Sequence record: NC_026927.1
Reading direction: 5' to 3' (one strand)
Length of the DNA stretch: 64,000 bases
The position numbers and the translations under genes were made by a program. Every line of letters begins with the position of its first letter. Position 1 is the first letter of the stretch. The notes under the pieces were generated by a model, which was given only the letters and a program-made list of their open reading frames with translations, was not told the origin of the DNA and did not search any database. Shown here one piece after another: positions 3,070 through 50,410 of the stretch.

Positions 3070-4233
3070 ATCGGCTATCTTATCGGTGGAGACTCTGAGG
3101 AGAAGCAGGAGGAGATTGTACAATCAGATAGTGACTATTCTAAACTATCTGATAAGCAACTGCAATACCTAAGAGCACAAACCATAAAGGATATTGCTAA
3201 GTTTTATAACTTCCAGCAAGTAAGGAAAATTACCCTAAACTCCGCTTATGGTGCTTTGGGTAACCAATACTTCAGATACTACAAACTGGCGAACGCGGAG
3301 GCAGTGACCTTCTCTGGTCAGTTAAGTATCCGTTGGATTGAGAATAAGATGAATGGATTCATCAATGAGATTCTAAAAACAGAGGGTAAGGATTATGTGA
3401 TCGCCTCTGATACTGACTCTATCTACATTAACTTTGGTGATGTGGTAGATAAGTTCTTGAAGAAGTTTGATGGTGATAAGGAGAAGACTGTATCAATGGT
3501 AGATAAGATCTGTAAGGATCAACTAGAACCCTTCATTGATAAGTGCTATTCTCAGTTGGGTGAGTATGTGAATGCATACGAACAGAAGATGCAGATGAAG
3601 AGAGAGAATATTGCAGATAGGGGTATATGGACAGCGAAGAAGAGATATATCCTGAACGTGTGGGATAGTGAAGGTGTTCGTTATGAGGAACCTAAACTGA
3701 AGATGATGGGTATTGAGGCTGTGAAGTCATCTACACCTGCCCCTTGTAGAACTATGATCAAGGATGCTCTCCGTATTATCATTGAGAAATCTGAGGATGA
3801 AGTCATTGACTACATTGATGATTGTAGGAAGAAGTTCAAACAGATGAAACCAGAGGAGATCGCGTTTCCTCGTTCCGTTAGTGATATGATCAAGTTTCGT
3901 TCTGGGACAACAATATATGCTAAGAGTACTCCTATGCATGTGAGGGGGGCGTTACTATTCAATCATCACATTAAGAAGGGTGGGTTGGAGAACAAGTATT
4001 CTCTCATCAATAGTGGTGAGAAGATCAAGTTCTGCTACCTCAAGATTCCTAATCTAATTGGTGAGAATGTTATCTCATTCATCTCCGACTTTCCTAGGGA
4101 ACTTAAGTTGGAGAAGTATGTTGATTATGATACCCAATTCAATAAAGCATTCCTAGATCCACTCAAGATCATCTTGGATGCTATTGGTTGGAACTGTGAG
4201 AAGCAGATGTCCTTGGAGTCATTTTTTACCTGA
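3070..4233 (+). CDS. gp43: family B DNA polymerase, C-terminal part (motifs B and C, thumb); start placed at a non-canonical ATC
   Basis: motif B RKITLNSAYGALGNQYFRY begins upstream of the track's TTG at 3256; motif C ASDTDSIY; frame open from 3043; GAGG at 3061-3064 precedes ATC at 3070. Product is certain, start is inferred. Confidence 0.85.
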   Translation: MGYLIGGDSEEKQEEIVQSDSDYSKLSDKQLQYLRAQTIKDIAKFYNFQQVRKITLNSAYGALGNQYFRYYKLANAEAVTFSGQLSIRWIENKMNGFINEILKTEGKDYVIASDTDSIYINFGDVVDKFLKKFDGDKEKTVSMVDKICKDQLEPFIDKCYSQLGEYVNAYEQKMQMKRENIADRGIWTAKKRYILNVWDSEGVRYEEPKLKMMGIEAVKSSTPAPCRTMIKDALRIIIEKSEDEVIDYIDDCRKKFKQMKPEEIAFPRSVSDMIKFRSGTTIYAKSTPMHVRGALLFNHHIKKGGLENKYSLINSGEKIKFCYLKIPNLIGENVISFISDFPRELKLEKYVDYDTQFNKAFLDPLKIILDAIGWNCEKQMSLESFFT

Positions 4234-4657: not shown

Positions 4658-5664
4658 TGGATTTCTTAAAGGATATTGTAAATGAAATTGGTGGCGACTT
4701 CACTCAGATTGCCTCAGAGATTGAAGAAAACGAAACATACGTGGACACTGGTTCGTTCATCTTTAATGCTCTTGTATCTGGGTCTATCTATGGTGGTGTA
4801 TCTGGTAACAAGATTACTGCAATTGCTGGGGAAAGTTCTACTGGAAAGACTTTCTTCTCACTCGCCGTGGTCAAGAACTTCTTGGATACTAATCCCGATG
4901 CATATTGCCTTTATTTTGATACTGAAGCTGCAATCAATAGAAACCTTCTTGAGTCACGAGGTATTGACCTTAAGCGGTTGGTTGTCGTCAATGTCGTTAC
5001 AGTAGAAGAGTTTAGGATGAAGGCACTTAAGTGTGTCGATATCTACCAGAAGAAACCAGAAGACGAACGCAAACCTTGTATGTTTGTCCTAGATTCTCTG
5101 GGTATGTTGTCTACAGAGAAAGAGATCAATGATGCTCTGAATGACAAGAACGTTCGTGATATGACTAAATCACAACTCATCAAAGGGGCGTTCAGGATGT
5201 TGACCTTGAAACTAGGTCAGGCTAAGATACCAATGATTGTTACTAACCATACCTATGATGTGATTGGTGCCTATGTTCCTACTAAGGAAATGGGTGGTGG
5301 TTCAGGTCTTAAGTATGCCGCCTCTACTATTATTCACCTCACTAAGAAGAAAGAGAAAGACGGTAAGGATGTTATTGGTAACATTATCAAGTGTAAGACA
5401 GCTAAGTCCAGACTCTCCAAAGAGAATACAGACGTAGGTGTTAGACTATTCTATGATGAACGGGGTTTGGATAAGTACTATGGTCTCCTAGAACTTGGTG
5501 AGCTTGGTGGTATGTGGAAGAACGTAGCTGGTCGTTATGACTTGGGTGATGGTAAGAAGATCTACGCTAAAGAGATACTAAAGGATCCAGAGAAGTACTT
5601 CACCGAAGAAGTTATGGAGAAACTGGATGTTGTTGCTAGGGGAACATTCTCATATGGGTCATAA
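4657..5664 (+). CDS. uvsX: RecA-like recombinase UvsX
   Basis: Walker A GESSTGKT, YFDTE, VLDSLG, MGGGSGLKYAAS; T4-like gene order next to gp41. Confidence 0.95.
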   Translation: MDFLKDIVNEIGGDFTQIASEIEENETYVDTGSFIFNALVSGSIYGGVSGNKITAIAGESSTGKTFFSLAVVKNFLDTNPDAYCLYFDTEAAINRNLLESRGIDLKRLVVVNVVTVEEFRMKALKCVDIYQKKPEDERKPCMFVLDSLGMLSTEKEINDALNDKNVRDMTKSQLIKGAFRMLTLKLGQAKIPMIVTNHTYDVIGAYVPTKEMGGGSGLKYAASTIIHLTKKKEKDGKDVIGNIIKCKTAKSRLSKENTDVGVRLFYDERGLDKYYGLLELGELGGMWKNVAGRYDLGDGKKIYAKEILKDPEKYFTEEVMEKLDVVARGTFSYGS

Positions 5665-8745: not shown

Positions 8746-8819
8746 GGGTCAGTAGCTCAGATGGATAGAGCAATTCACTTCTAATGAATTGGTCGGGGGT
8801 TCGAGTCCCTCCTGACCCG
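8746..8819 (+). tRNA. trnR-UCU: tRNA-Arg (anticodon TCT), CCA not encoded
   Basis: acceptor GGGTCAG/CTGACCC, anticodon arm ATTCA-CTTCTAA-TGAAT, T-loop GTTCGAGT. Confidence 0.95.
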
Positions 8820-8841
8820 TTGGGGTCTAATTAACCCCATA

Positions 8842-9026
8842 GGATGTGACAGAATGAACCGTTTGGTTAATACCGGTCATTGTATAGTAGGGAAGGCTGT
8901 GGTGGCCGCCAGAAAGACTAGGAGACTAGAGTTCTGAGAACCCATACCAGGGTCCCGAAAGTTCAGAGGTATTACTATTCTTAGTATGACCCCTCTGTTG
9001 GAGGTAAAAAGATAATCCTCCCATCC
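8842..9026 (+). ncRNA. ~185-nt multi-stem RNA between the two tRNAs, possibly the manA RNA motif
   Basis: closing GGATG/CATCC; internal stems AATGA(A)CCG/CGGTCATT, CTAG-GAGA-CTAG, CAGAGG/CCTCTG, GGAGG/CCTCC; no ORF; family name from recollection only. Confidence 0.55.
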
Positions 9027-9032
9027 ACCCAA

Positions 9033-9104
9033 TCCACAATAGCTCAGCGGTAGAGTCGGCGACTGTTAATCGCCTTGTCCCTGGTTCGAATCCAGGTTGT
9101 GGAG
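9033..9104 (+). tRNA. trnN-GUU: tRNA-Asn (anticodon GTT), CCA not encoded
   Basis: acceptor TCCACAA/TTGTGGA, anticodon arm GGCGA-CTGTTAA-TCGCC, T-loop GTTCGAAT. Confidence 0.95.
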
Positions 9105-36202: not shown

Positions 36203-36433
36203 ATGAAAACCACATCCTTCCTAAGGTATCTTGGAAATACCTTACTAGTGTTGGGTCATTTCACACTCCTTTGGGGGGATACACAGACCGCCTTGACTAT
36301 CAAAATCATAGGTGGTCTTTCTTTGTTACCCTTTGCCATCTCCTGGAAGTTGTGGGATGTTGTGGCACTTGAGTTAATATTTGGAGGTATGGATGTAACC
36401 AAGTTCATCCAGCTGGTGTTTTCTAACTCCTAG
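36203..36433 (+). CDS. small membrane protein
   Basis: several hydrophobic segments; abuts the upstream stop. Confidence 0.65.
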   Translation: MKTTSFLRYLGNTLLVLGHFTLLWGDTQTALTIKIIGGLSLLPFAISWKLWDVVALELIFGGMDVTKFIQLVFSNS

Positions 36434-36474
36434 GGTTTCTTTATTCCCTTACAAAGATGAAGTGGCGCACCTGA

Positions 36475-36503
36475 TTGGCAAACCCAAAAATATGTGTTAT
36501 ACT
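36475..36503 (+). promoter_or_regulatory. sigma70-type promoter
   Basis: TTGGCA-17nt-TATACT with TGTG extension. Confidence 0.7.
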
Positions 36504-36508
36504 GGGTA

Positions 36509-36594
36509 GGTATTGGTAGCGTTTTCAGGGGTGAATAAACTACCAATACCAATCTAAACTCATAGAAAACCACTCCTCATGGGGTGGTTTTTTT
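36509..36594 (+). ncRNA. candidate stand-alone small RNA
   Basis: perfect 11-bp stem GGTATTGGTAG/CTACCAATACC with a 20-nt loop, then a terminator; no ORF. Confidence 0.5.
36567..36594 (+). terminator. intrinsic terminator
   Basis: AAAACCACTCC-TCAT-GGGGTGGTTTT then T-run. Confidence 0.75.
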
Positions 36595-36628
36595 GTGCGC
36601 GTATAACTAGTGTAACTTGGGTTACATT

Positions 36629-36957: not shown

Positions 36958-37956
36958 ATGAAAGCTTTAATCTCTGGTATAACTGGGCAGGATGGATCCT
37001 ATCTTGCTGAACTTCTACTGAAGAAGGGGTATGAAGTCCATGGTATTATTCGTAGAACCTCCTCGTTTAATACAGGAAGAATCGATCATATCTTCGATCA
37101 GTTACACCTCCACTACGGGGATTTGACTGACTCCCTGAACATAGTCTCTATCATTAAGGAAGTAGAACCTGATGAGATCTACAACCTAGGGGCACAGAGT
37201 CATGTGAAAGTATCTTTCGAGGAACCTGAATATACAGCACAGACTGATGCTCTGGGAACCCTAAGAGTATTGGAGGCAGTTCGTCTCCTAGGTATGACAG
37301 ATAGGGTCCGTATCTACCAGGCATCCACCAGTGAGTTGTATGGGTTGGTACAAGAGACACCACAGAAAGAAACAACACCTTTCTACCCACGATCTCCATA
37401 TGGCGTAGCTAAACTCTATGGATATTGGATTGTAAAGAACTACAGAGAGAGTTATGGGATGCACGCCAGTAGTGGTATTCTATTCAACCATGAGTCACCA
37501 CGACGGGGTGAGACTTTCGTAACCCGTAAGATTACTAGGGGACTATCCCGTATTAGTACAGGACTACAGGATTGTCTATACCTAGGTAATCTAAACTCAA
37601 GACGAGATTGGGGTCATGCTGAAGACTATGTGGAGGCTATGTGGTTGATGTTACAACAGGAAACTCCTGATGACTATGTGATTGCCACAGGTAAAGAGTA
37701 TTCAGTGAAGGACTTTGTAGAGGCATCTGCTGAATACTTTGGTATGAAGATTGAGTGGCAGGGTGAAGGATTGGATGAAGTGGGTATAGATAGATTTACA
37801 AAGAAGGTTGTCGTTCGTGTGAGTGACAAATACTTCAGACCAGCAGAGGTTGAAACTCTCTGGGGTGATCCCACTAAGGCTAAAGAGGTATTGGGTTGGA
37901 AACCTAAGCATACCTTTGCTTCCCTAGTAGAAGATATGTGTATCTACGGTCAGTAA
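36958..37956 (+). CDS. gmd: GDP-mannose 4,6-dehydratase
   Basis: [60 protein letters not shown]; start moved to ATG 36958. Confidence 0.97.
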
Positions 37957-37958
37957 TT

Positions 37959-38885
37959 ATGGAAAAAGGTGCAACGGTAGCAGTATTTGGTTCGGGTGGA
38001 TTGGCTGGAAGTGCCATCACCAGGGCACTCAGGTGTTCTTTTGGGGGGTATAAGATTCTTACTCCTAGGAGTAAAGAACTAGACCTAAGAGAACAAGCAG
38101 ATGTTCGTAGTTGGTTTAAGCATAACAAAGTTGATTATGTATTCTTAGCTGCTGCTTTAGTTGGTGGTATCATGGCTAACAAGACTAGAAAGGCAGAGTT
38201 CTTACATGACAATCTAATGATGCAGTGTAATGTAATTGACTCTGCATACTATAGTGGAGTGAAGAAACTTCTATTCCTAGGTACTTCTTGTATCTATCCA
38301 GCAGGAAGGCACCATCCACTAGTGGAACATGAACTACTCACAGGACTATTAGAACCAACCAATGACGCATACGCAATCGCAAAGATCGCAGGGATCAAAC
38401 AATGTGACTTCTACCGAGAACAATATGGATTTGATGCTATCTCTATCATGCCTCCTAATCTATATGGTCCTGGAGATAATTTCAATGAGGGATCAGGACA
38501 TGTCCTCGCCTCATTGATGAATAGGTTTCACCTAGCGAAGGAAGCAGGTGCATCTAGAGTTGAATGTTGGGGTGATGGGACACCTATGAGGGAGTTCCTA
38601 TATGTGGATGACTTAGCAGATGCTTCCTTATACTTTATGGATAGTTATAGTGAGTCTGGGCACATTAATACTGGGACTGGTAGGGATGTAACTATCAAAC
38701 AACTAGCGGAGACTATTGCTGATGTAGTTGGATACAAAGGTGAGATAGGTTGGGATACAACTAAACCCAACGGAAACCCAAGGAAACTACTTGACAGCAG
38801 TAGGGCAAACCTGTTAGGATGGGAACCCAAGGTTAAATTTGAAGACGGAATCAAACTCACATACAACTGGTATCTAGCACAATGA
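37959..38885 (+). CDS. fcl: GDP-4-keto-6-deoxy-sugar epimerase/reductase (Fcl/WcaG or ColC type)
   Basis: AALVGGI.AN, FLGTSCIYP, LEPTN..YAIAK, PPNLYGP.DNF, HV, WGDG.P.REFL.VDD. Confidence 0.92.
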   Translation: MEKGATVAVFGSGGLAGSAITRALRCSFGGYKILTPRSKELDLREQADVRSWFKHNKVDYVFLAAALVGGIMANKTRKAEFLHDNLMMQCNVIDSAYYSGVKKLLFLGTSCIYPAGRHHPLVEHELLTGLLEPTNDAYAIAKIAGIKQCDFYREQYGFDAISIMPPNLYGPGDNFNEGSGHVLASLMNRFHLAKEAGASRVECWGDGTPMREFLYVDDLADASLYFMDSYSESGHINTGTGRDVTIKQLAETIADVVGYKGEIGWDTTKPNGNPRKLLDSSRANLLGWEPKVKFEDGIKLTYNWYLAQ

Positions 38886-40075
38886 CAAAGATTACAAATG
38901 GATATACGTGGCCTCTTATGAAGGACACTGTGACCAAGAGAGATAGGTTGAGGATGGCAAAGTTTATCCTCACCAGTGATAGACTAACACAAGGTAAAGA
39001 AGTTCGTAAGTTTGAGGAGCAGTGGAGTGAGTGGCTTGGAGTTAAACATTCTCTTTTTGTTAGCAGTGGCAGTACCGCTAACCTACTTCTTGTGTCTGCT
39101 TGGAAGGAATTATACGAGATCCCAGACCAGTCGAAAGTAATTGTACCTGCTTGTACTTGGGTAACTAATGTTGCTCCTATCATTCAGTGTGGTTTGACTC
39201 CAATCTTTTGTGACATCAACTTAGAAGACTACTCCTTTGATCTGGATAAACTACAGGATATTCGTGATGAATATCACGATGACATCAGAGGTATCTTTGT
39301 TACTCACCTCCTAGGATTTCCTGCTAATGTGGAAAAGTTTCGTGATGTTTTCCCCGACGCTCATATTCTAGAAGATGTATGTGAGAGTCACGGAGCAGTC
39401 CTCCCTAGTGGTGATAAGGCGGGAACCTTTGATGTTGGTGGCACATTTAGTTTCTACTTTGGGCACCACATGACTACCATTGAAGGTGGTATGGTGAGTA
39501 CTAATGATCCAGAACTCTATGATCTAATGAGAATGAAGCGTTCTCATGGGTTAGCGAGAGAATCACTATACTTTGAAACATACAAAGAGAAGTATCCTGA
39601 TGTAAATCCACAGTTTCTCTTCGTTACTGAGGGATATAACTTCCGTAATACTGATCTAGCTGCTGTATTAGGACAGTCTCAACTGAAGAGACTAGACAGT
39701 ATGATTGGGATTCGTAACAGGAACTATGAGTTATACCAACAATTACTAAAGAAACACGAACATGACCTTACACATGAGTATGGTGGTTCTTTCTATATCC
39801 CCTCCACACAGGGGGATGTAAGTAGTTTCTGTTTTCCATTTGTAGTTGATAATATGCACTGCTATCTTAAGTTAAAAGAACTTCTAGAAGAATACTATGT
39901 TGAGTATCGACCTATTGTGAGTGGTAACCTCCTACGACAACCATTCTTGAGAGAATATTCTGCTGAGTGTCCCAAGGCAGATATAGCCCATGAAAAGGGA
40001 CTATATATTGGGAATAATCACTTTGTAGATGAGTCTAACTTTCACATGCTAGATGAGATTTTGAGCCAACTTTGA
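38882..40075 (+). CDS. PLP-dependent DegT-family enzyme, ColD-type GDP-4-keto-6-deoxymannose 3-dehydratase candidate
   Basis: VSSGSTANLL, EDVCESHGA, TFSFYFGHHMTTIEGG (His at the usual Schiff-base Lys), GYNFR. Confidence 0.8.
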   Translation: MTKITNGYTWPLMKDTVTKRDRLRMAKFILTSDRLTQGKEVRKFEEQWSEWLGVKHSLFVSSGSTANLLLVSAWKELYEIPDQSKVIVPACTWVTNVAPIIQCGLTPIFCDINLEDYSFDLDKLQDIRDEYHDDIRGIFVTHLLGFPANVEKFRDVFPDAHILEDVCESHGAVLPSGDKAGTFDVGGTFSFYFGHHMTTIEGGMVSTNDPELYDLMRMKRSHGLARESLYFETYKEKYPDVNPQFLFVTEGYNFRNTDLAAVLGQSQLKRLDSMIGIRNRNYELYQQLLKKHEHDLTHEYGGSFYIPSTQGDVSSFCFPFVVDNMHCYLKLKELLEEYYVEYRPIVSGNLLRQPFLREYSAECPKADIAHEKGLYIGNNHFVDESNFHMLDEILSQL

Positions 40076-40076
40076 T

Positions 40077-40871
40077 ATGACATTTTCATTTAATCATATG
40101 GGCAACTTGGGGCATCTGGGAAACCAGATGTTTCAGTATGCCGCACTCATTGGTATGGGGGCTAAGCATGGGAGGAGTATTTGTATCCCCCATAAACAAA
40201 GTTTTGGGCAATCATACTACCAGGATCTTCGTAGTAATATCTACGATGCTTTCAACCTCTCACCCAATGGTGTAGGTATCAGTAGGTTCCCCACAGTTCA
40301 GGAAGGTAGTTTCCACTTTGATGAAAACTTATTTGAGAACCCACCAGAGGAGAACTGTAACCTCTATGGATTCTTCCAGAGTGAAAAGTGGTTCTCACAT
40401 ATCAAAGAAGGTATTAAGAAAGAGTTCACTCTAAAGGATGAATACCGGGAAGTGGCACAACTGATGAGAGAACAACTCTCTGGTCAGGTTGTTGCTATTC
40501 ATGTTCGTAGAACTGACTACCTATCCAATCCAAACCACGGAGCATTGGGTTTAGATTACTATGAGAAGGCACTGGAGTTGGTTCCTAATAACCTTACAGT
40601 AGTTGTATTCACTGATGATCCAGAGTGGGCTAAAGAACAACCACTCTTTCCAGATGATAGGTTCTTTGTATCAGAGACAGACTGTCCCTATACAGACCTT
40701 GCTCTTATGAGTATGTGTGATTATCATATTATTGCCAACAGTTCATACTCTTGGTGGGGTGCATACTTATCTGATAGTAAGAAAGTAATTGCTCCTAAAC
40801 AGTGGTTTGGGGAACCACTTAAAACAAATAACCTGAAAGATCTTTATTGTGATGGGTGGGTGAAACTATGA
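40077..40871 (+). CDS. GT11-family glycosyltransferase (alpha-1,2-fucosyl/colitosyltransferase-like)
   Basis: GHLGNQMFQYA, GFFQSEKWF, IHVRRTDY, DYYEKA, VFTDD, IIANSSYSWWGAYL. Confidence 0.92.
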   Translation: MTFSFNHMGNLGHLGNQMFQYAALIGMGAKHGRSICIPHKQSFGQSYYQDLRSNIYDAFNLSPNGVGISRFPTVQEGSFHFDENLFENPPEENCNLYGFFQSEKWFSHIKEGIKKEFTLKDEYREVAQLMREQLSGQVVAIHVRRTDYLSNPNHGALGLDYYEKALELVPNNLTVVVFTDDPEWAKEQPLFPDDRFFVSETDCPYTDLALMSMCDYHIIANSSYSWWGAYLSDSKKVIAPKQWFGEPLKTNNLKDLYCDGWVKL

Positions 40872-41491
40872 GTAACTTTGCAAGTGCTAAACAGTTTATC
40901 AAGAATGGTATTGATACACAACAGGAGTCTATCTCTGGTGGTGGCAGCACTATGGCTTCCACAGTTGCCTTCAGATACTTCCTACCAAAGTATATCAAAC
41001 AGTATGGTATTGAGAGTATCTTAGACATTGGGTGTGGTGACTGGCATTGGATGTCTACTATCAGAGAAGAGTTTCCTGATGTAGACTATGAGGGATGGGA
41101 TGCCTCTGAGGATATGATTAATCCCATGACTGAGAAGTATGGAACAGAGAATACCAGGTTTGAGGTAAAGGATATCATTGATAACAAGTATCCCAAAGTG
41201 GATTTGGTTATCGCTCGTGATGTTCTATTCCACCTCAAAGAAGATTACCTAAAGAAGGTTCTCAAGAATATCAGTAAGGCAGGTGTGAAGTATCTACTAG
41301 CAACTACCTTCCCAGGTTTACCTAAGAACGAAGAACTCACTCCTAAGAAATATGACGGTTGGGGATTCAGACCAATCAATCTGGATATCGAGCCTTATAA
41401 TATGAAAGATTATTGTATCAATGATTTCAAGGAAACCACAGCCCCCAACAGGGGGTATCATCGTCATGTGTATTTGTATGAGGTAAAATGA
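40868..41491 (+). CDS. class I SAM-dependent methyltransferase
   Basis: ILDIGCGD, YEGWD, DLVIARDVLFHL. Confidence 0.85.
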   Translation: MSNFASAKQFIKNGIDTQQESISGGGSTMASTVAFRYFLPKYIKQYGIESILDIGCGDWHWMSTIREEFPDVDYEGWDASEDMINPMTEKYGTENTRFEVKDIIDNKYPKVDLVIARDVLFHLKEDYLKKVLKNISKAGVKYLLATTFPGLPKNEELTPKKYDGWGFRPINLDIEPYNMKDYCINDFKETTAPNRGYHRHVYLYEVK

Positions 41492-41640
41492 AGATCGAAA
41501 TTGAACTCTCTAAAGATGTAGAATACAAAGGAGAGAAACTAGGTGAGTATATCTGGAACCTAGAAGAGGGAATTAATCATGTTACTGGCTTTGGTGATTC
41601 ACTTGAGGAATGTTTTAAGGAAATTGTGAGGTTTAGATGA
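41488..41640 (+). CDS. small hypothetical protein (50 aa)
   Basis: ATGA overlaps at both ends, GAGG SD. Confidence 0.55.
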   Translation: MKIEIELSKDVEYKGEKLGEYIWNLEEGINHVTGFGDSLEECFKEIVRFR

Positions 41641-42368
41641 AGAAAGTAGCTATTATTTTTATTGGAACAGGTAGATACCTAGAGTTTCTACCAAAGTATT
41701 ATGAACAGGCAGAAGCAAACCTCTTCCCTGACAGACCCAAACACTACTATGTGTTTACTGATGGTGACTTAGGTAATGAACTACCTGACAATGTAACTGT
41801 ATACGAACAGGAACATCTCCAATGGCCATACATCACCCTCTATCGTTTCGGTATTATCCAGAAACACCTAGAGGAGATTGAGAAGGAGTGTGGTTTCCTA
41901 CTCTTTATGGATGCTGATACACAGGTAGTATCCCCTGTATCGTTCGATGAAGTATTCAAGAAGGGAAAACCCTATACAGGTGTTCATCACCCCTGCCACG
42001 CCCTGAATATGCCACCACACAATGAGTTTCCTGGTAGTCTAGAAACTAATACAGCATCCAAGGCAGCATGTAAACCTGGTGATGACTTCTCTGTATATTG
42101 GCAAGGTTGTGTATGGGGTGGAAACATCAAGGGTGCTCGTAAGATTATTGATACTCTCCACCACAGAACTAAACAAGATGAGGAGAATGGAATCATTGCT
42201 AAGTGGCATGATGAAAGTCATATCAATAGATACTTCCTTGACAACAAAGATAAGGTGAATACCCTATCACCTAGTTTCGCATACCCAGAGTCCTTCACTG
42301 AGTATATGGAAGACTACGAACCTAAGATTGTACACCTAGCAAAAGAGAATTCTAAGTATCAGGTATGA
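41637..42368 (+). CDS. GT6-family glycosyltransferase (ABO/alpha-1,3-Gal(NAc) transferase-like)
   Basis: IFIGTGRYLEF, YYVFTD, FMDAD (DXD), YWQGCVWGG, WHDESHINRY. Confidence 0.9.
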   Translation: MKKVAIIFIGTGRYLEFLPKYYEQAEANLFPDRPKHYYVFTDGDLGNELPDNVTVYEQEHLQWPYITLYRFGIIQKHLEEIEKECGFLLFMDADTQVVSPVSFDEVFKKGKPYTGVHHPCHALNMPPHNEFPGSLETNTASKAACKPGDDFSVYWQGCVWGGNIKGARKIIDTLHHRTKQDEENGIIAKWHDESHINRYFLDNKDKVNTLSPSFAYPESFTEYMEDYEPKIVHLAKENSKYQV

Positions 42369-42988
42369 GTTACTTCACAGATTATGACAACGAATTCACA
42401 GTATTCGAGGCACCAAAGAACGGGGGAACTACTCTCCGTCTTTGGATATACTACGCAGGAACAGGGGAGTTGGTGAAGTCAGCGGAGTCTGAATACTACG
42501 CTGGCACTGGAGAAACATACAAACAACTCCAAGAGTGGGGTTATGTGAATGGGGAATACGAGAACCCCAAGACCCAGATGGTATGTATCAAGAGAGACCC
42601 TGTAGATAGGTTTGTAAGTGCCTTCTATGATAAGGTAATCAAAGAGGGGAGAATCAAAGTAACCATCGATGAGTTTCTCTCAAACTATGAAGAGATACTT
42701 GATAAGTCTACCCTCAAGATGAATGATGGTAAGACTAACTTCATGAAGTTTCACTTTGAGTCACAGACATATCACTTCGGTAAAGATAAAGATCTATATC
42801 ATAAGGTCTTTGATATCTCAGAGGTTGGTACTGGTCTGAAGAAGTATCTGGAGGGTAAGTGGAATATAGAACTACCTGATGTCCATGCTAGAAATAGTGG
42901 TGGTGGTCGGAAGTTTGATCTCTCCAGGGGACAACTGAATAAGGTGAAGGAAATCTACACACAGGACTATTATAATGGCTGGTACTGA
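42365..42988 (+). CDS. sulfotransferase (Sulfotransfer_2-like)
   Basis: 5'-PSB-like APKNGGTTL and 3'-PB-like RDPVDRFVSAF; H...Q. Confidence 0.75.
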   Translation: MSYFTDYDNEFTVFEAPKNGGTTLRLWIYYAGTGELVKSAESEYYAGTGETYKQLQEWGYVNGEYENPKTQMVCIKRDPVDRFVSAFYDKVIKEGRIKVTIDEFLSNYEEILDKSTLKMNDGKTNFMKFHFESQTYHFGKDKDLYHKVFDISEVGTGLKKYLEGKWNIELPDVHARNSGGGRKFDLSRGQLNKVKEIYTQDYYNGWY

Positions 42989-43760
42989 AGGATATATCCT
43001 GATAGGTATTGGTGATAGGTATCTACAGATGACAGAGAACCTCACTAAAACTCTAAAGAAACATGGAGATAATAGAGGATCCCTAACTATCACAAGATCG
43101 GATAATAGGGAACTCTATAGTGAGTGTAACACTGAGTTTGAGAGGAATGGAACTCTACCTAAGATTACCTTAGATAGATACTTACCTTTTGATCACAATA
43201 TATTCCTAGATGCTGATATGTTATGTGTAGGTGATACACAACATGTATGGGATCTATTCAGGAGTAGTGATCAGTTTGTTCAACAGGTAGGATGTTTGGG
43301 AAGAGATCCTAACTTCCACGCTCACCAGTATGAGAGTGAGTTGGGTTTTGAGATTCCTAGAGTCCATGGTGGTTGTATCTACATCAATAGAGAGAAACTA
43401 GACCCAGGGTTCTTTCCCTATATGAGAGAGTGTTTCCTAAACTATAAACAAATATTTCATAATAGTGGTCTAACCTATAAGAATAGTAGACCAGATCAAC
43501 CACTATACGCTCTAGCAAATGGTATGTGGGGATTCAAACCTGTGGATCTATACACTAACCCTATCATGACTATTGTGAATGATAGCACCCCACCCCCACT
43601 AGATAGTGTGTTCTTCAATAAGAAGAGGGGTCCTAAGTTAGATACTCCTGTTCCCTTTGTTCATGTATTCCGTGGAGAAGAGGGTATGTCTAGGGGTTAT
43701 ACTAGAGGTGACCAGAAGATGTTGTTGTCCCATTATGATTACTACCTGAACTATGAATAA
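42975..43760 (+). CDS. GT-A fold glycosyltransferase-like protein (GT8-like)
   Basis: PKI.LD, IFLDADML, GG...IN, DQP. Confidence 0.6.
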   Translation: MAGTEGYILIGIGDRYLQMTENLTKTLKKHGDNRGSLTITRSDNRELYSECNTEFERNGTLPKITLDRYLPFDHNIFLDADMLCVGDTQHVWDLFRSSDQFVQQVGCLGRDPNFHAHQYESELGFEIPRVHGGCIYINREKLDPGFFPYMRECFLNYKQIFHNSGLTYKNSRPDQPLYALANGMWGFKPVDLYTNPIMTIVNDSTPPPLDSVFFNKKRGPKLDTPVPFVHVFRGEEGMSRGYTRGDQKMLLSHYDYYLNYE

Positions 43761-44541
43761 AACTATATGGATGTGTTGGTTCCAGGGTTGGGATAAGGCA
43801 CCAGAGATTACAGAGAAGTGTTTAGAGTCCTGGAAACACTACAATAGTGATTGGGATATTGTTCTACTAGATGAATCCAACTACAAGGATTACATCTCCA
43901 TTGATAAAGAACTACCAGGACTGAAGACAAACTATATCTCACTGGGTGATATCCTTCGTCTCTTTCTACTAAAAGAGCATGGTGGAGTATGGGCAGATGC
44001 AACTATCTTCTGCAACAAACCAGTGGATTGGGTTTTGGATTATGAGGATTCTTTCATCTTCACCAGGAAGGATAAGATGATTGCCTCTTGGTTTGTTGCT
44101 GCTCAGAAAGATTCCCATGTTGTAGATGTATGGTATAATAAGATGTTAGAGTTCTGGAAGTATCGTATGGAAAATACAGATACTTTCGAGCAACAATATG
44201 GTTGGATACACGCTTTGTTCCGTCAGTCCTACGCTCAGGATAATGGGTTCAGGGATATTGTAGATAGTATGGATAAGATTGATTGCATGAGTGATGGTCA
44301 ATCTAGAGGTAAGGGTCCGCACTTCTTTGCACCCTACAGTAAATACTTCTACAACCCTATCAGTGACACGATAAAGAATCGTATAGACTCTAAAGTTGAT
44401 CCACTATATAAGTTGTCTTACAAGGCAAACACAGACTGGAGAAGTCCAGAGAACAGGGGTATCCACCCAGCAGACCAAAAGATTATGTTGGAATATCCAA
44501 CTAATAGTGAACTACATTATCTACTCAACACATTAAAATGA
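43753..44541 (+). CDS. capsular polysaccharide synthesis / GT32-like DXD glycosyltransferase
   Basis: IWMCWFQG..KAP...CLESW, DILRL.LL..HGGVWADAT. Confidence 0.85.
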   Translation: MNKTIWMCWFQGWDKAPEITEKCLESWKHYNSDWDIVLLDESNYKDYISIDKELPGLKTNYISLGDILRLFLLKEHGGVWADATIFCNKPVDWVLDYEDSFIFTRKDKMIASWFVAAQKDSHVVDVWYNKMLEFWKYRMENTDTFEQQYGWIHALFRQSYAQDNGFRDIVDSMDKIDCMSDGQSRGKGPHFFAPYSKYFYNPISDTIKNRIDSKVDPLYKLSYKANTDWRSPENRGIHPADQKIMLEYPTNSELHYLLNTLK

Positions 44542-45443
44542 CAAATAAATCATTGGTTACCGGTGGCGCGGGTTTCATCGGGTCACATATTGTGGACCGA
44601 CTTATTACACTAGGACATCAAGTCGTAGTGATTGACAATGAATCCTCTGATGGTCATGATGAATACCATTGGAACAGAAGCGGACAAGTACAAAACCATA
44701 AGGCAGACATTCGTGACTACGATGCAATCAAACACTTGTTTGGTGGAGTCAATAATGTTTTTCACCTTGCCGCTAAAGCATCAGTACAGGCGTCAGTAGA
44801 TAACCCCCTACCAACTATTGCCACACAGGTAATGGGAACCGCCAATGTATTGGAGGCAGCACGACAATCTGGTGTGAGTAAGTTTGTATATTCCTCTACT
44901 AGTGCTTGTTATGGTAACAACAACCCCATTCCTAATGTAGAAACGATGAGAGAAGATCCTCTCAACGCCTATGCTATTGGTAAGTTATCTGGGGAACAAC
45001 TAGTTCGTGCCTATCACTACCTCTATGGTATGAAGACGGTGGCATTCCGTTATACCAATGTATATGGGGAGAGGGCAAGACATGTAGGACACTATGCTCC
45101 TGCTGTTAGTAAGTTCCTAAAGATGAGAGCACAGGGAGAACCTCTAACTATCTTTGGTGATGGTGCCCAACGCCGAGACTTTATTCATGTATCTGATGTA
45201 GTCAACGCTAACTGCTGTATTACCTATGAGGAACTAGAGCAGTGGGGTGAGACCTACAACATTGGTTATGGTAAGAACTGGAGTATCCAAGAGATTGCAG
45301 ACTCTATCAGTCAGGAACAGATTCACCTATCTGCTCGTACTGGTGAGATGCGTGAGACGCTTGCTGATATTGGGAAGGCAAAGGCAGAGTTGATGTGGAA
45401 ACCAAAGACTGACATCATGGATTGGATTAGGGTACAACTCTGA
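44538..45443 (+). CDS. NAD-dependent nucleotide-sugar epimerase/dehydratase
   Basis: LVTGGAGFIGSH, FHLAA, YSSTS, YAIGK, RYTNVYG, GDGAQRRDFIHV. Confidence 0.92.
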   Translation: MTNKSLVTGGAGFIGSHIVDRLITLGHQVVVIDNESSDGHDEYHWNRSGQVQNHKADIRDYDAIKHLFGGVNNVFHLAAKASVQASVDNPLPTIATQVMGTANVLEAARQSGVSKFVYSSTSACYGNNNPIPNVETMREDPLNAYAIGKLSGEQLVRAYHYLYGMKTVAFRYTNVYGERARHVGHYAPAVSKFLKMRAQGEPLTIFGDGAQRRDFIHVSDVVNANCCITYEELEQWGETYNIGYGKNWSIQEIADSISQEQIHLSARTGEMRETLADIGKAKAELMWKPKTDIMDWIRVQL

Positions 45444-46060
45444 TGCCAGTATTCCAGAAGGACAACAAGAAAGTTCTATTCATCCATGTTCCCAAGACTG
45501 CGGGGAGTTCTGTGAATAAACTCTTTGTGAATAATGGATATGAAATGTCCTACTATTCTGAGAGTTCTAAAGATCTATACAATGGATTATGTGGACCACA
45601 ACATCTGGACTCACTTCTATTGGAAGATGAGTTCCAAGATTTCTCTCAGTTTGATTATATCTTCTCTATCTTCAGAGACCCAGTAGACAGACATCTATCT
45701 GAGTTCACCTGGGCACCCTGGGGACTAATGGGTAGAAACATCTACACACCAGAAAGATTTGATGAGTGGTGTCCTAAGATATTCAGGGCGTATCAGGACT
45801 CACCATATAGGATGGATAACCACATTAGACCTCAACATGAGTTCTATGTGGATGGATGTGATGTGTATGACTATGAGAATATCGATACACTCACAGAGAA
45901 ACTATGTGATAAAATAGGTCTAGATAATAAAGAGATGCCATATGAAAGGTCTTCACGATATGATAGTGAGGATTATGTCATCTATGAAGATACTTACGAT
46001 TGTATCACTGAATTTTACAAAGGAGACTATCAATGGCAAAAGGATTCAGTCCTGTTGTGA
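45443..46060 (+). CDS. sulfotransferase (Sulfotransfer_2-like)
   Basis: FIHVPKTAGSSV, FRDPVDRHLSEF, HIRPQHEF. Confidence 0.85.
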   Translation: MPVFQKDNKKVLFIHVPKTAGSSVNKLFVNNGYEMSYYSESSKDLYNGLCGPQHLDSLLLEDEFQDFSQFDYIFSIFRDPVDRHLSEFTWAPWGLMGRNIYTPERFDEWCPKIFRAYQDSPYRMDNHIRPQHEFYVDGCDVYDYENIDTLTEKLCDKIGLDNKEMPYERSSRYDSEDYVIYEDTYDCITEFYKGDYQWQKDSVLL

Positions 46061-46911
46061 CTAAGGATAAGAACAAGTCCCAGTTCAAACTACAGGGTGT
46101 TCCTAGGATTTACTACATCAGTTTAGATGATCATGCTCATCGTCAAGACTATATGGAGTCCCAGTTTGAAGACTGGGGCATCACTAACTTCGAAAGAATC
46201 TCTGCTCATGATGGTAGAGGTGATAATGATCTGAGTGATATTCTCAAAGGATCTTATCCAAAGATGATGAGTTCTGGTGAGGTTGGTTGTGTAACCTCTC
46301 ACCTAAAGGCACTAAAACACTGGTTAGATACTACAGAGGGTGAAGAGTTTCTCCTTATGATGGAGGATGATTGTGATATCTCCACTGCTTCCCACTGGGG
46401 GTTCTCCTGGAGAGAGTTTGTTGGGAATATTCCATCCCATGTAGATTGTGTTCAGTTAGCAGTTATCAACCCATCAGAACTACATATCAAACTCCATATC
46501 AGGTTTGTGAATGATTTCTCCACTGCCTCATACCTAATCCGTAGATCACACGCAGAGAAGTTAGTTAGACTCTATTGTAGGGGTGATAAGTATAAACTTG
46601 ATAGTGATATCAAACCCAGAGCAGTTGCTGATGATCTTATCTACAACTCTGGTGTGACTCTTGCTATGCCTCTATTTGCCTTCAAGATTGCACTAGGTTC
46701 CAGTATCCATGATGTCCATATCAATACCTTCCACAAGAGTAGTCATGATGGTATCTGGGAGTTTTGGAAGAAAACAGCACCAACTATTGAGAACTGGAAA
46801 CCATTCTTCAACTATGATGCCTATCTGGGAACCCTACCACCCAATGTTGTGGTTCAACAATGGCAGCAAAAACAGGAATCCAAAGCAAAAGATTCAGGGG
46901 CTTCGCAATAG
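46033..46911 (+). CDS. GT25-family glycosyltransferase
   Basis: YYISLD...R..YM, FERISAHDG, GEVGCVTSHL, MEDD. Confidence 0.85.
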   Translation: MAKGFSPVVTKDKNKSQFKLQGVPRIYYISLDDHAHRQDYMESQFEDWGITNFERISAHDGRGDNDLSDILKGSYPKMMSSGEVGCVTSHLKALKHWLDTTEGEEFLLMMEDDCDISTASHWGFSWREFVGNIPSHVDCVQLAVINPSELHIKLHIRFVNDFSTASYLIRRSHAEKLVRLYCRGDKYKLDSDIKPRAVADDLIYNSGVTLAMPLFAFKIALGSSIHDVHINTFHKSSHDGIWEFWKKTAPTIENWKPFFNYDAYLGTLPPNVVVQQWQQKQESKAKDSGASQ

Positions 46912-50261: not shown

Positions 50262-50298
50262 AAACACATAAATAAGATATGTAAAGTTCTTATTACAA

Positions 50299-50410
50299 CA
50301 CTTCCATCTAACCGAGACCTATGGGGAAGTAAAATACGTCTCTAATACCTACACCGGAGGGTGGTGTAGGAATAATACTATCGTCAGCTCCCCCTGGCAC
50401 TACTTACCCT
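50299..50410 (+). promoter_or_regulatory. structured psbA leader, probably the PhotoRC-II RNA motif
   Basis: CTTCC/GGAAG stem with CTAACCGAGAC loop, downstream GTCTC partner, CCTACACC/GGTGTAGG stem; family name from recollection. Confidence 0.6.

Follow-up and report, generated by a model that had tools for sequence, protein, structure and literature searches.

A predicted ColD-type 3-dehydratase in a four-gene sugar-nucleotide module of cyanophage ACG-2014f and its probable role in GDP-colitose synthesis

The four-gene module and its products

The analyzed stretch of DNA (hereafter, the window) comprised 64,000 nucleotides (nt) of the genome of Synechococcus phage ACG-2014f isolate Syn7803C90 (NC_026927.1/KJ019059.1, bases 124001–188000; window base 1 is record base 124001), and the subject of this work is a group of four of its genes that may provide the phage with an activated form of the 3,6-dideoxyhexose colitose. 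ACG-2014f is a lytic, T4-like cyanomyovirus (Kyanoviridae) of marine Synechococcus. The 3.9-kb sequence of the four genes was 100% identical to the record of this isolate. All four genes lie on the + strand and encode, in order, the guanosine diphosphate (GDP)-mannose 4,6-dehydratase Gmd (36958–37956, 332 aa), an Fcl-type GDP-4-keto-6-deoxymannose epimerase/4-reductase presumed to perform the step of ColC (37959–38885, 308 aa), a pyridoxal/pyridoxamine 5'-phosphate (PLP/PMP)-dependent enzyme predicted to be a ColD-type GDP-4-keto-6-deoxy-D-mannose 3-dehydratase (38882–40075, 397 aa), and a glycosyltransferase of family GT11, which comprises alpha-1,2-fucosyl/colitosyl-transferases (40077–40871, 264 aa). 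The end of the Fcl-like gene and the start of the PLP enzyme gene overlap by 4 nt. It should be noted that the mechanically derived open reading frame (ORF) of the Fcl-like gene begins with GTG at 37938, and the RefSeq start is the ATG at 37959. The genes are tightly packed and form the first part of a glycan island, approximately 10 kb long, which stops ahead of the hli, ferredoxin, tail-fibre and psbA genes. Their positions coincided with those given by the first-pass annotation, which had been made from the sequence letters alone, and they probably constitute a translationally coupled module diverting host GDP-mannose to a 3,6-dideoxy sugar.

The product of the first gene scored 555 bits with the TIGR01472 model (equivalog cut-off of 415), matched PF16363 in Pfam (E-value = 1.6e-152) and had 65% identity to Gmd of E. 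coli K-12, so that its initial assignment to Gmd was borne out. The second product matched the E. coli GDP-fucose synthase 1bsv in a search of the PDB (E-value = 3.9e-92). The catalytic Cys and downstream His reported for it at first pass are indeed retained, with Cys112/His181 aligned with the acid–base pair Cys109/His179 of E. coli Fcl; likewise, T110, Y138 and K142 aligned with S107, Y136 and K140, and ColC keeps the same S/T-Y-K and Cys/His residues as Fcl. The fourth product matched PF01531 (E-value = 6.2e-28; 98 bits, gathering threshold of 23.9), and its motifs GNQMFQYA, HVRRTDY and HIIANSSYSWWGAYL aligned with those of WbgN, whereas the PDB sequence search with this protein returned only spurious tetratricopeptide repeat matches. 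The family E-values of the PLP enzyme, the Fcl-like protein and the GT11 protein were far beyond chance.

The PLP enzyme and its place among the 3-dehydratases

The PLP enzyme belongs to the DegT family (PF01041, E-value = 1.6e-59). In the PDB sequence search, its four best matches were wild-type and mutant chains of ColD (2gms, residues 24–382, E-value = 8.4e-51), compared with E-values of 7e-30 for E1 and 1e-25 for PerA. The protein contains the motif F189-S-F-Y-F-G-H195-H196-M-T-T-I-E-G-G, in which H195 aligned with His188 of ColD in a column marked by the mutant chains 3b8x (H188N) and 2r0t (H188K). Each of these chains departs from wild-type ColD in this single column, so that the match of H195 to His188 follows directly from the alignment. 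In the 53-sequence alignment, this column held Lys in ArnB, WecE and three archaeal aminotransferase paralogues, whereas His replaced the Schiff-base Lys in all 41 examined members of the clade containing the phage protein. No Cys is present between residue 197 and about residue 316. In E1 of Y. pseudotuberculosis, the sequence DCYCAPGCDNTC is located approximately 25 residues downstream of the motif, and the E1-like protein of cyanophage S-H68 has GCYCVG...VCG in the same Cys-cluster region; across the alignment, the cluster was confined to E1-type proteins. Both features that had been read from the letters at first pass, namely, His in place of the Schiff-base Lys and the lack of the Cys cluster of E1, were thus recovered, and when the protein was aligned with ColD, PerA and RfbH-type sequences, as had been proposed there, its His stood opposite the catalytic His of ColD, with ColD the closest relative.

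In the maximum likelihood tree of PLP enzymes, rooted on Lys-type aminotransferases, the His-type dehydratases formed one clade (support 100/99), in which the Fe–S/E1 group (95/86) was sister to a clade combining enterobacterial ColD with the phage-containing clade (100/97). The phage-containing clade itself (98/90) has the invariant motif FSFYFGHHMTT(I/V)EGGM and includes uncultured viral, bacterial and archaeal members. By its sequence, the PLP enzyme therefore goes with ColD where the tree divides into ColD and E1, as a lineage sister to characterised ColD and not inside it. An AlphaFold2 model of the enzyme, built on 35 homologues, had a mean pLDDT (predicted local distance difference test) of 91.8; in the Foldseek comparison with the PDB, its 12 best matches were all ColD chains (template modelling (TM) score of 0.83–0.89), followed by GDP-perosamine synthase and then by E1. 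The PDB match, the rooted tree and the structural comparison agree with the earlier preference for ColD over E1 and perosamine synthase. Consequently, the protein is very probably a ColD-type, Fe–S-free, His-type 3-dehydratase, and neither an aminotransferase nor an E1.

It had also been expected that automated annotation would miss this function, and the databases bore this out: the enzyme is labelled "aminotransferase" in RefSeq and PHROGs, "hypothetical" in GenBank, and as the cytidine diphosphate (CDP) pathway enzyme E1 in IMG and UniRef. Even ColD of E. coli is named by PGAP only as a DegT-family aminotransferase.

The candidate pathway and competing explanations

Three independent context signals point to the product of Gmd, a GDP-linked sugar, as the probable substrate of the PLP enzyme. 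A scan of metagenome-assembled genomes (MAGs) with exact peptide patterns found 20 loci with homologues, spanning Bacteroidota, Pseudomonadota, Thermodesulfobacteriota, Methanosarcinales and DPANN archaea, and in 12 of them the ColD homologue was beside a Gmd gene. No cyanobacterial locus was among these 20, which, given the exact-peptide scan, says nothing on whether the hosts own ColD. In four DPANN MAGs (L009, L011, L012 and L015), a single ORF of 741–776 aa encodes both Gmd and the ColD homologue, a Rosetta-stone fusion that joins the first two steps of colitose synthesis. The MAGs bearing the fusion belong to Pacearchaeota/Nanoarchaeota (for example, L012, 4900–7230), and in L011 and L012 an Fcl-like gene and another gmd come after the fused ORF. 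Among viruses, at least 206 IMG/VR contigs matched the clade peptides, and in at least 59 of the 80 loci retrieved from them Gmd was located within 5 kb of the ColD homologue. Neither an RfbF-type NTP_transferase nor an E3 gene was found among the annotated parts of the window. Two genes located 20 kb upstream and labelled "cytidyltransferase" were considered as members of a CDP pathway and rejected, as they fall outside the NTP_transferase/RfbF family.

In the proposed pathway, Gmd, according to its family membership, would make GDP-4-keto-6-deoxy-D-mannose. The ColD-type enzyme would bind this product as a PMP Schiff base, His195 would abstract the C4' proton, and the 3-OH would be expelled; hydrolysis would then yield GDP-4-keto-3,6-dideoxy-D-mannose and ammonia, and, because L-glutamate regenerates PMP, no Fe–S partner reductase would be needed. 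This mechanism is carried over from ColD, in which the His acts on the PMP–sugar Schiff base to expel the 3-OH, the enamine is hydrolyzed to GDP-4-keto-3,6-dideoxymannose, and glutamate regenerates PMP (PMC8987622); the assignment of the phage gene to the ColD type is strongly supported, and residue roles beyond that of His188 were taken from the same review and from PDB entry titles. In the third step, the Fcl-type enzyme would epimerise C5 through Cys112/His181 and reduce C4 to give GDP-L-colitose, and it may also turn the unprocessed intermediate into GDP-L-fucose. This ColC step is presumed from the gene context. Acceptance of a 3-deoxy substrate by an Fcl-type enzyme is chemically plausible, since the step requires no more than C5 epimerisation and C4 reduction, and a mixed GDP-fucose/GDP-colitose output is possible, since the intermediate is shared by two competing enzymes, Fcl and ColD. 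The GT11 enzyme would finally add a 6-deoxy- or 3,6-dideoxy-L-sugar in alpha-1,2 linkage to a galactoside, and the GT6, GT25, GT32-like, methyl- and sulfotransferases of the island may extend or decorate the glycan. GDP-L-colitose is the likely end product. Thus, of the complete colitose pathway with its own transferase that the first-pass annotation had put forward, Gmd, the ColD-type enzyme and the gene order were upheld, whereas a reductase of the ColC clade and a colitose-specific GT11 were not.

Several points weigh against this reading. In the PLP enzyme, the catalytic His is preceded by Gly194, which is invariant in the FYFGHH clade, and not by the Ser187 of E. coli ColD; the substitutions S187N and H188K jointly turn ColD into an aminotransferase (PDB 3gr9 title). 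The identity of the phage protein to characterised ColD of E. coli and Yersinia is only 32–34%. The epimerase-reductase is 50% identical to Fcl of E. coli K-12 and 38–39% identical to ColC of E. coli and Yersinia. In the tree, it formed one group (97/96) with K-12 Fcl and the Fcl homologues from three cyanophages without ColD, P-SSM2, S-SKS1 and S-SCSM1, while characterised ColC (E. coli O55, Yersinia) formed a separate clade (100/100). Forced grouping of the phage proteins with ColC changed the log-likelihood by −15 lnL units (approximately unbiased (AU) test, p = 0.043), which is a marginal value for a grouping chosen after the tree was seen. Furthermore, no residue position separated the 27 ColD-linked from the 4 ColD-less Fcl-like sequences, and we know of no Fcl-clade enzyme shown to accept a 3-deoxy substrate. 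As for the glycosyltransferase, its identity to WbgN was 32%, compared with 33% for the GT11 proteins of the ColD-less phages P-SSM2 and S-SCSM1. WbgN is a GT11 colitosyltransferase whose natural donor is GDP-colitose, but GDP-fucose is also well tolerated (PMC12723683), so that membership in the family does not fix the donor.

With the Fcl model NF047922, the epimerase-reductase of the window scored 420 bits, below the cut-off of 500, other ColD-linked viral copies 423–425 bits, and true ColC 304–316 bits. Fcl-like genes adjoining ColD homologues elsewhere were found in several unrelated branches of the tree; hence, the partnership with ColD is polyphyletic. Fcl function and ColC function are not told apart by sequence. 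Of the Fcl/ColC-type enzyme claimed at first pass, there remains an Fcl-like protein with its Cys/His pair, and membership in ColC was set aside because of the Fcl-clade position and the AU result. The GT11 protein of the window is 42–43% identical to those of P-SSM2 and S-SCSM1; an attempt to derive its donor from the similarity to WbgN was abandoned, as it is no closer to WbgN than the GT11 proteins of ColD-less phages are. The earlier claim of a colitosyltransferase accordingly holds for the family, to which WbgN belongs (PMC12723683), and not for the donor, which is not readable from sequence. Because the reductase groups with Fcl and the donor of GT11 is not fixed, the product may be GDP-colitose, GDP-fucose or both.

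A different explanation, which we consider unlikely, assumes two branches: Gmd, Fcl and GT11 would serve L-fucose, and the ColD product would be reduced without C5 epimerisation by another short-chain dehydrogenase/reductase (SDR), for example gp233, to a D-configured 3,6-dideoxyhexose (tyvelose-like or its 4-epimer), moved by another glycosyltransferase of the cluster. The phylogenetic position of the epimerase-reductase as an Fcl is consistent with this explanation, as is the occurrence of Gmd–Fcl in the ColD-less phages P-SSM2, S-SKS1 and S-SCSM1 (in P-SSM2 and S-SCSM1 together with GT11), the module of S-SCSM1 having been published as fucose synthesis (PMC9602691). Nine viral contigs (L064, L065, L078, L080, L081, L086 and L089–L091) carry Gmd–ColD followed by a distant SDR, 24–26% identical to Fcl, and no Fcl; therefore, ColD products can be handled by non-Fcl reductases, and a spare SDR is present in the window. 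This spare SDR, however, is GalE-like (gp233, 44538–45443, +; best NCBIfam match TIGR01179, 176 bits) and is 4.5 kb away, whereas the Fcl–ColD overlap and the ColD–GT11 adjacency are conserved over 55–99% ColD identity. In about a dozen viral loci within this range of identity to the window, the gene immediately after ColD encodes a GT11, which argues for their coupling, and the same pairing of an fcl-like gene with colD defines real colitose loci.

It is very improbable that the PLP enzyme is E1 (RfbH) of the CDP pathway, making abequose-, paratose- or tyvelose-type sugars. RfbH is its best NCBIfam match (NF011936), but the score of 183 bits is far under the cut-off of 423, and E. coli ColD itself reaches 263 bits with the same model; the E1 names in IMG, UniRef and the GenBank record of phage S-CAM7 and the ferredoxin gene approximately 7 kb downstream have to be set against a protein with no [2Fe-2S] cysteine motif, its position with ColD in the tree, a neighbouring Gmd with no CDP-glucose genes in the annotated parts of the window, and the different appearance of the true E1-type enzyme of cyanophage S-H68. 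Hardly credible, too, is a sugar 4-aminotransferase resembling perosamine synthase, since, despite the DegT fold and Pfam match, the RefSeq and PHROG labels, and GDP-perosamine synthase as the next structural match after ColD, the clade has His for the Schiff-base Lys throughout, Gly194 stands where aminotransferases have Asn, the E-value of the sequence match is 25 orders of magnitude poorer for PerA than for ColD, and the Lys-type aminotransferases are the outgroup of the tree.

Distribution of the module, surrounding genes and significance

The ColD-type enzyme of the preferred colitose pathway is real and common in marine viruses. The order Gmd–Fcl–ColD was kept in phage S-CAM7, in the uncultured cyanomyovirus contigs L025 and L026, and in at least 38 of the 80 IMG/VR loci, with GT11 within 5 kb in 28 of the latter. 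In L025 and L026, the module is syntenic with that of the window and comes after the gene for peptide deformylase, and in L025 CpeT is also located upstream. Comparison of the ColD genes of the window and S-CAM7 gave pN = 0.22 and pS = 0.80 (saturated), which indicates purifying selection on ColD; within the species, dN/dS was uninformative owing to a single nucleotide difference. Between two ACG-2014f isolates (the window and KJ019085), 122 nt differences were found in Gmd, 30 in Fcl, 1 in ColD and 3 in GT11, so that the module itself is a sharp mosaic produced by recombination. In another group of viral contigs (L022, L050–L054, L066–L073 and L114), ColD is followed by a 255-aa CTP_transf_like + MannoseP_isomer-C protein; this architecture and that of the nine contigs without Fcl may lead to different 3,6-dideoxy sugars. 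The simplest history of the module looks like an insertion of colD into a cyanophage fucose module (Gmd-Fcl...GT11). As a tentative generalization, for which the odds appear slightly unfavourable, marine viruses may commonly convert a fucose module to a colitose module by the insertion of a single gene, colD, with a promiscuous Fcl-clade enzyme as the colitose synthase.

Downstream of the module, the glycan cluster on the + strand begins with a gene for an S-adenosylmethionine-dependent methyltransferase (40868–41491; Methyltransf_12/25/31), the start of which overlaps the GT11 stop by 4 nt, and continues with a GT6 glycosyltransferase gene (41637–42368; PF03414, E-value = 3e-21; NF041524, 175 bits). 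The remaining cluster (42365–46911, +; Pfam/RefSeq assignments) comprises a Sulfotransfer_2 gene (42365–42988), a gene for a 261-aa protein without family assignment, a Caps_synth/Gly_transf_sug (GT32-like) gene, the gp233 gene, a second Sulfotransfer_2 gene (45443–46060) and a GT25 gene (46033–46911). The GT11 and GT6 genes are 0.8 kb apart, and at least 14 viral contigs have the same pair downstream of ColD. The ABH blood-group trisaccharide and its mimic in E. coli O86 are assembled by enzymes of these two families, and the pair hints at a (Fuc/Col)-alpha-1,2-[hexose-alpha-1,3]-Gal motif. The orthologous island of S-CAM7 contains an adenylylsulfate (APS) kinase gene (L030:11747–12316), which, together with the two Sulfotransfer_2 genes, suggests that the glycan specified by the phage is sulfated.

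A wcaG RNA motif (RF01761) was matched at 36383–36476 (+), approximately 480 nt upstream of gmd with a small ORF in between; the match was below threshold (30.7 bits, gathering threshold of 42, E-value = 0.0018), and a riboswitch-like RNA of this type upstream of the window gmd was not accepted. A hairpin with a T-run at 36567–36596, between this match and gmd, was read from the sequence and was absent from the terminator scan. In S-SCSM1, an annotated wcaG RNA lies approximately 1 kb upstream of gmd (L035, 3904–3990; gmd start at 4983). Elsewhere in the window, a manA RNA motif (RF01745, 90 bits) was located at 8746–9104 (+), exactly between two tRNA genes and upstream of two 2-oxoglutarate-Fe(II) oxygenase genes, and a PhotoRC-II RNA motif (69.5 bits) at 50288–50383 (+), directly upstream of psbA, as is usual in cyanomyoviruses. 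The gp43 DNA polymerase is represented by two RefSeq coding sequences (1217–2692 and 3256–4233) with two small ORFs between them, i.e., the gene is split or interrupted.

Cyanophages are well known to carry sugar-nucleotide genes, and 3,6-dideoxyhexoses count as bacterial sugars that are rare and antigenically dominant. In the searchable part of the literature, no virus was reported to make a 3,6-dideoxyhexose and no paper was found that links colitose to cyanophages; the papers naming both colitose and phages showed, by title and abstract, no apparent phage-encoded colitose pathway. If GDP-colitose is made, one of the hypervariable "lipopolysaccharide (LPS)" islands of cyanomyoviruses would acquire a chemically defined product, which can be searched for on infected cells or virions and is relevant to superinfection exclusion, receptor masking and grazing. 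It would then also be evident that current annotation hides a widespread viral enzyme clade, to judge from the number of matched IMG/VR contigs, and the module would offer a natural test of whether Fcl-type enzymes serve as colitose synthases. If the conversion of fucose to colitose modules is true as well, infected picocyanobacteria or virions would bear colitose-capped, possibly sulfated, ABH-like glycans (GT11 + GT6), a virus-encoded pathway to a 3,6-dideoxyhexose would be documented for the first time, "ColC" would be no distinct family, and ordinary Fcl enzymes would have a latent colitose synthase activity.

Comparison with known systems

In E. coli O55/O111, WbdK corresponds to ColD and WbdJ to ColC, and Y. 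pseudotuberculosis O:6, O:7 and O:10 have the order gmd-colA-colB. In the E. coli O55 locus (found via ColD P0125), colC (307 aa) overlaps colD by 4 nt, and a GT11 gene occupies the wbgN position; the Yersinia similis locus contains GT11, gmd, colC, colD and manC. The phage module has in common with these loci the order gmd, fcl-like gene, colD, together with the 4-nt overlap of the fcl-like gene with colD (O55) and a GT11 gene in the locus. Enterobacterial ColD likewise has the catalytic His, no Fe–S motif and the same fold. The motifs differ (FSSF(Y/F)SHHIATMEGGC in enterobacterial ColD, FSFYFGHHMTT(I/V)EGGM in the phage clade), the reductase belongs to the ColC clade in enterobacteria and to the Fcl clade in the phage, and the phage module is without manB/manC, wzx and wzy.

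The second related system is the cyanophage fucose module (Gmd–Fcl with GT11 in S-SCSM1 and P-SSM2, Gmd–Fcl in S-SKS1), whose Gmd and Fcl are homologous to those of the window, with 54–55% identity for Fcl. In S-SCSM1, it was interpreted as GDP-fucose synthesis with an alpha-1,2-fucosyltransferase, and, like the module of the window, it has the character of a hypervariable "cell-surface" gene island (PMC9602691). In the 13-kb stretch around Gmd–Fcl of P-SSM2, S-SKS1 and S-SCSM1, no ColD-type gene was found, whereas in the window colD is wedged between Fcl and GT11. The E1/E3 CDP pathway (RfbH/DdhC) and SpnQ share with the window the PMP-dependent C3 deoxygenation of a 4-keto-6-deoxy nucleotide sugar by an enzyme with His for Lys; E1 and SpnQ, however, need a [2Fe-2S] cluster and a reductase (PMC8987622), and the window protein is without the corresponding cysteines. 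E1-type 3-dehydratases with the Fe–S Cys cluster were identified in phages S-H68 (L031:4842–6137), S-B43, RB11-B and RN05-S (best PDB match E1, E-value = 1.3e-69), and the island of S-H68 has a GT11 gene 3 kb downstream. Through these genes, cyanophages have another route to dideoxyhexoses, one of the CDP type.

A further counterpart is gp227 of phage S-CAM7 (KU686212), an orthologue with 65% identity in the same Gmd–Fcl–dehydratase–GT11 module. It was named "putative CDP-4-keto-6-deoxy-D-glucose-3-dehydrase", so that its dehydratase nature is already on record, but under a CDP name; in the literature searched, no connection of this protein with colitose was found. The result is not revolutionary, as the chemistry and all four families are known; given this and the S-CAM7 record, the module of ACG-2014f is best described as a probable viral member of a known pathway.

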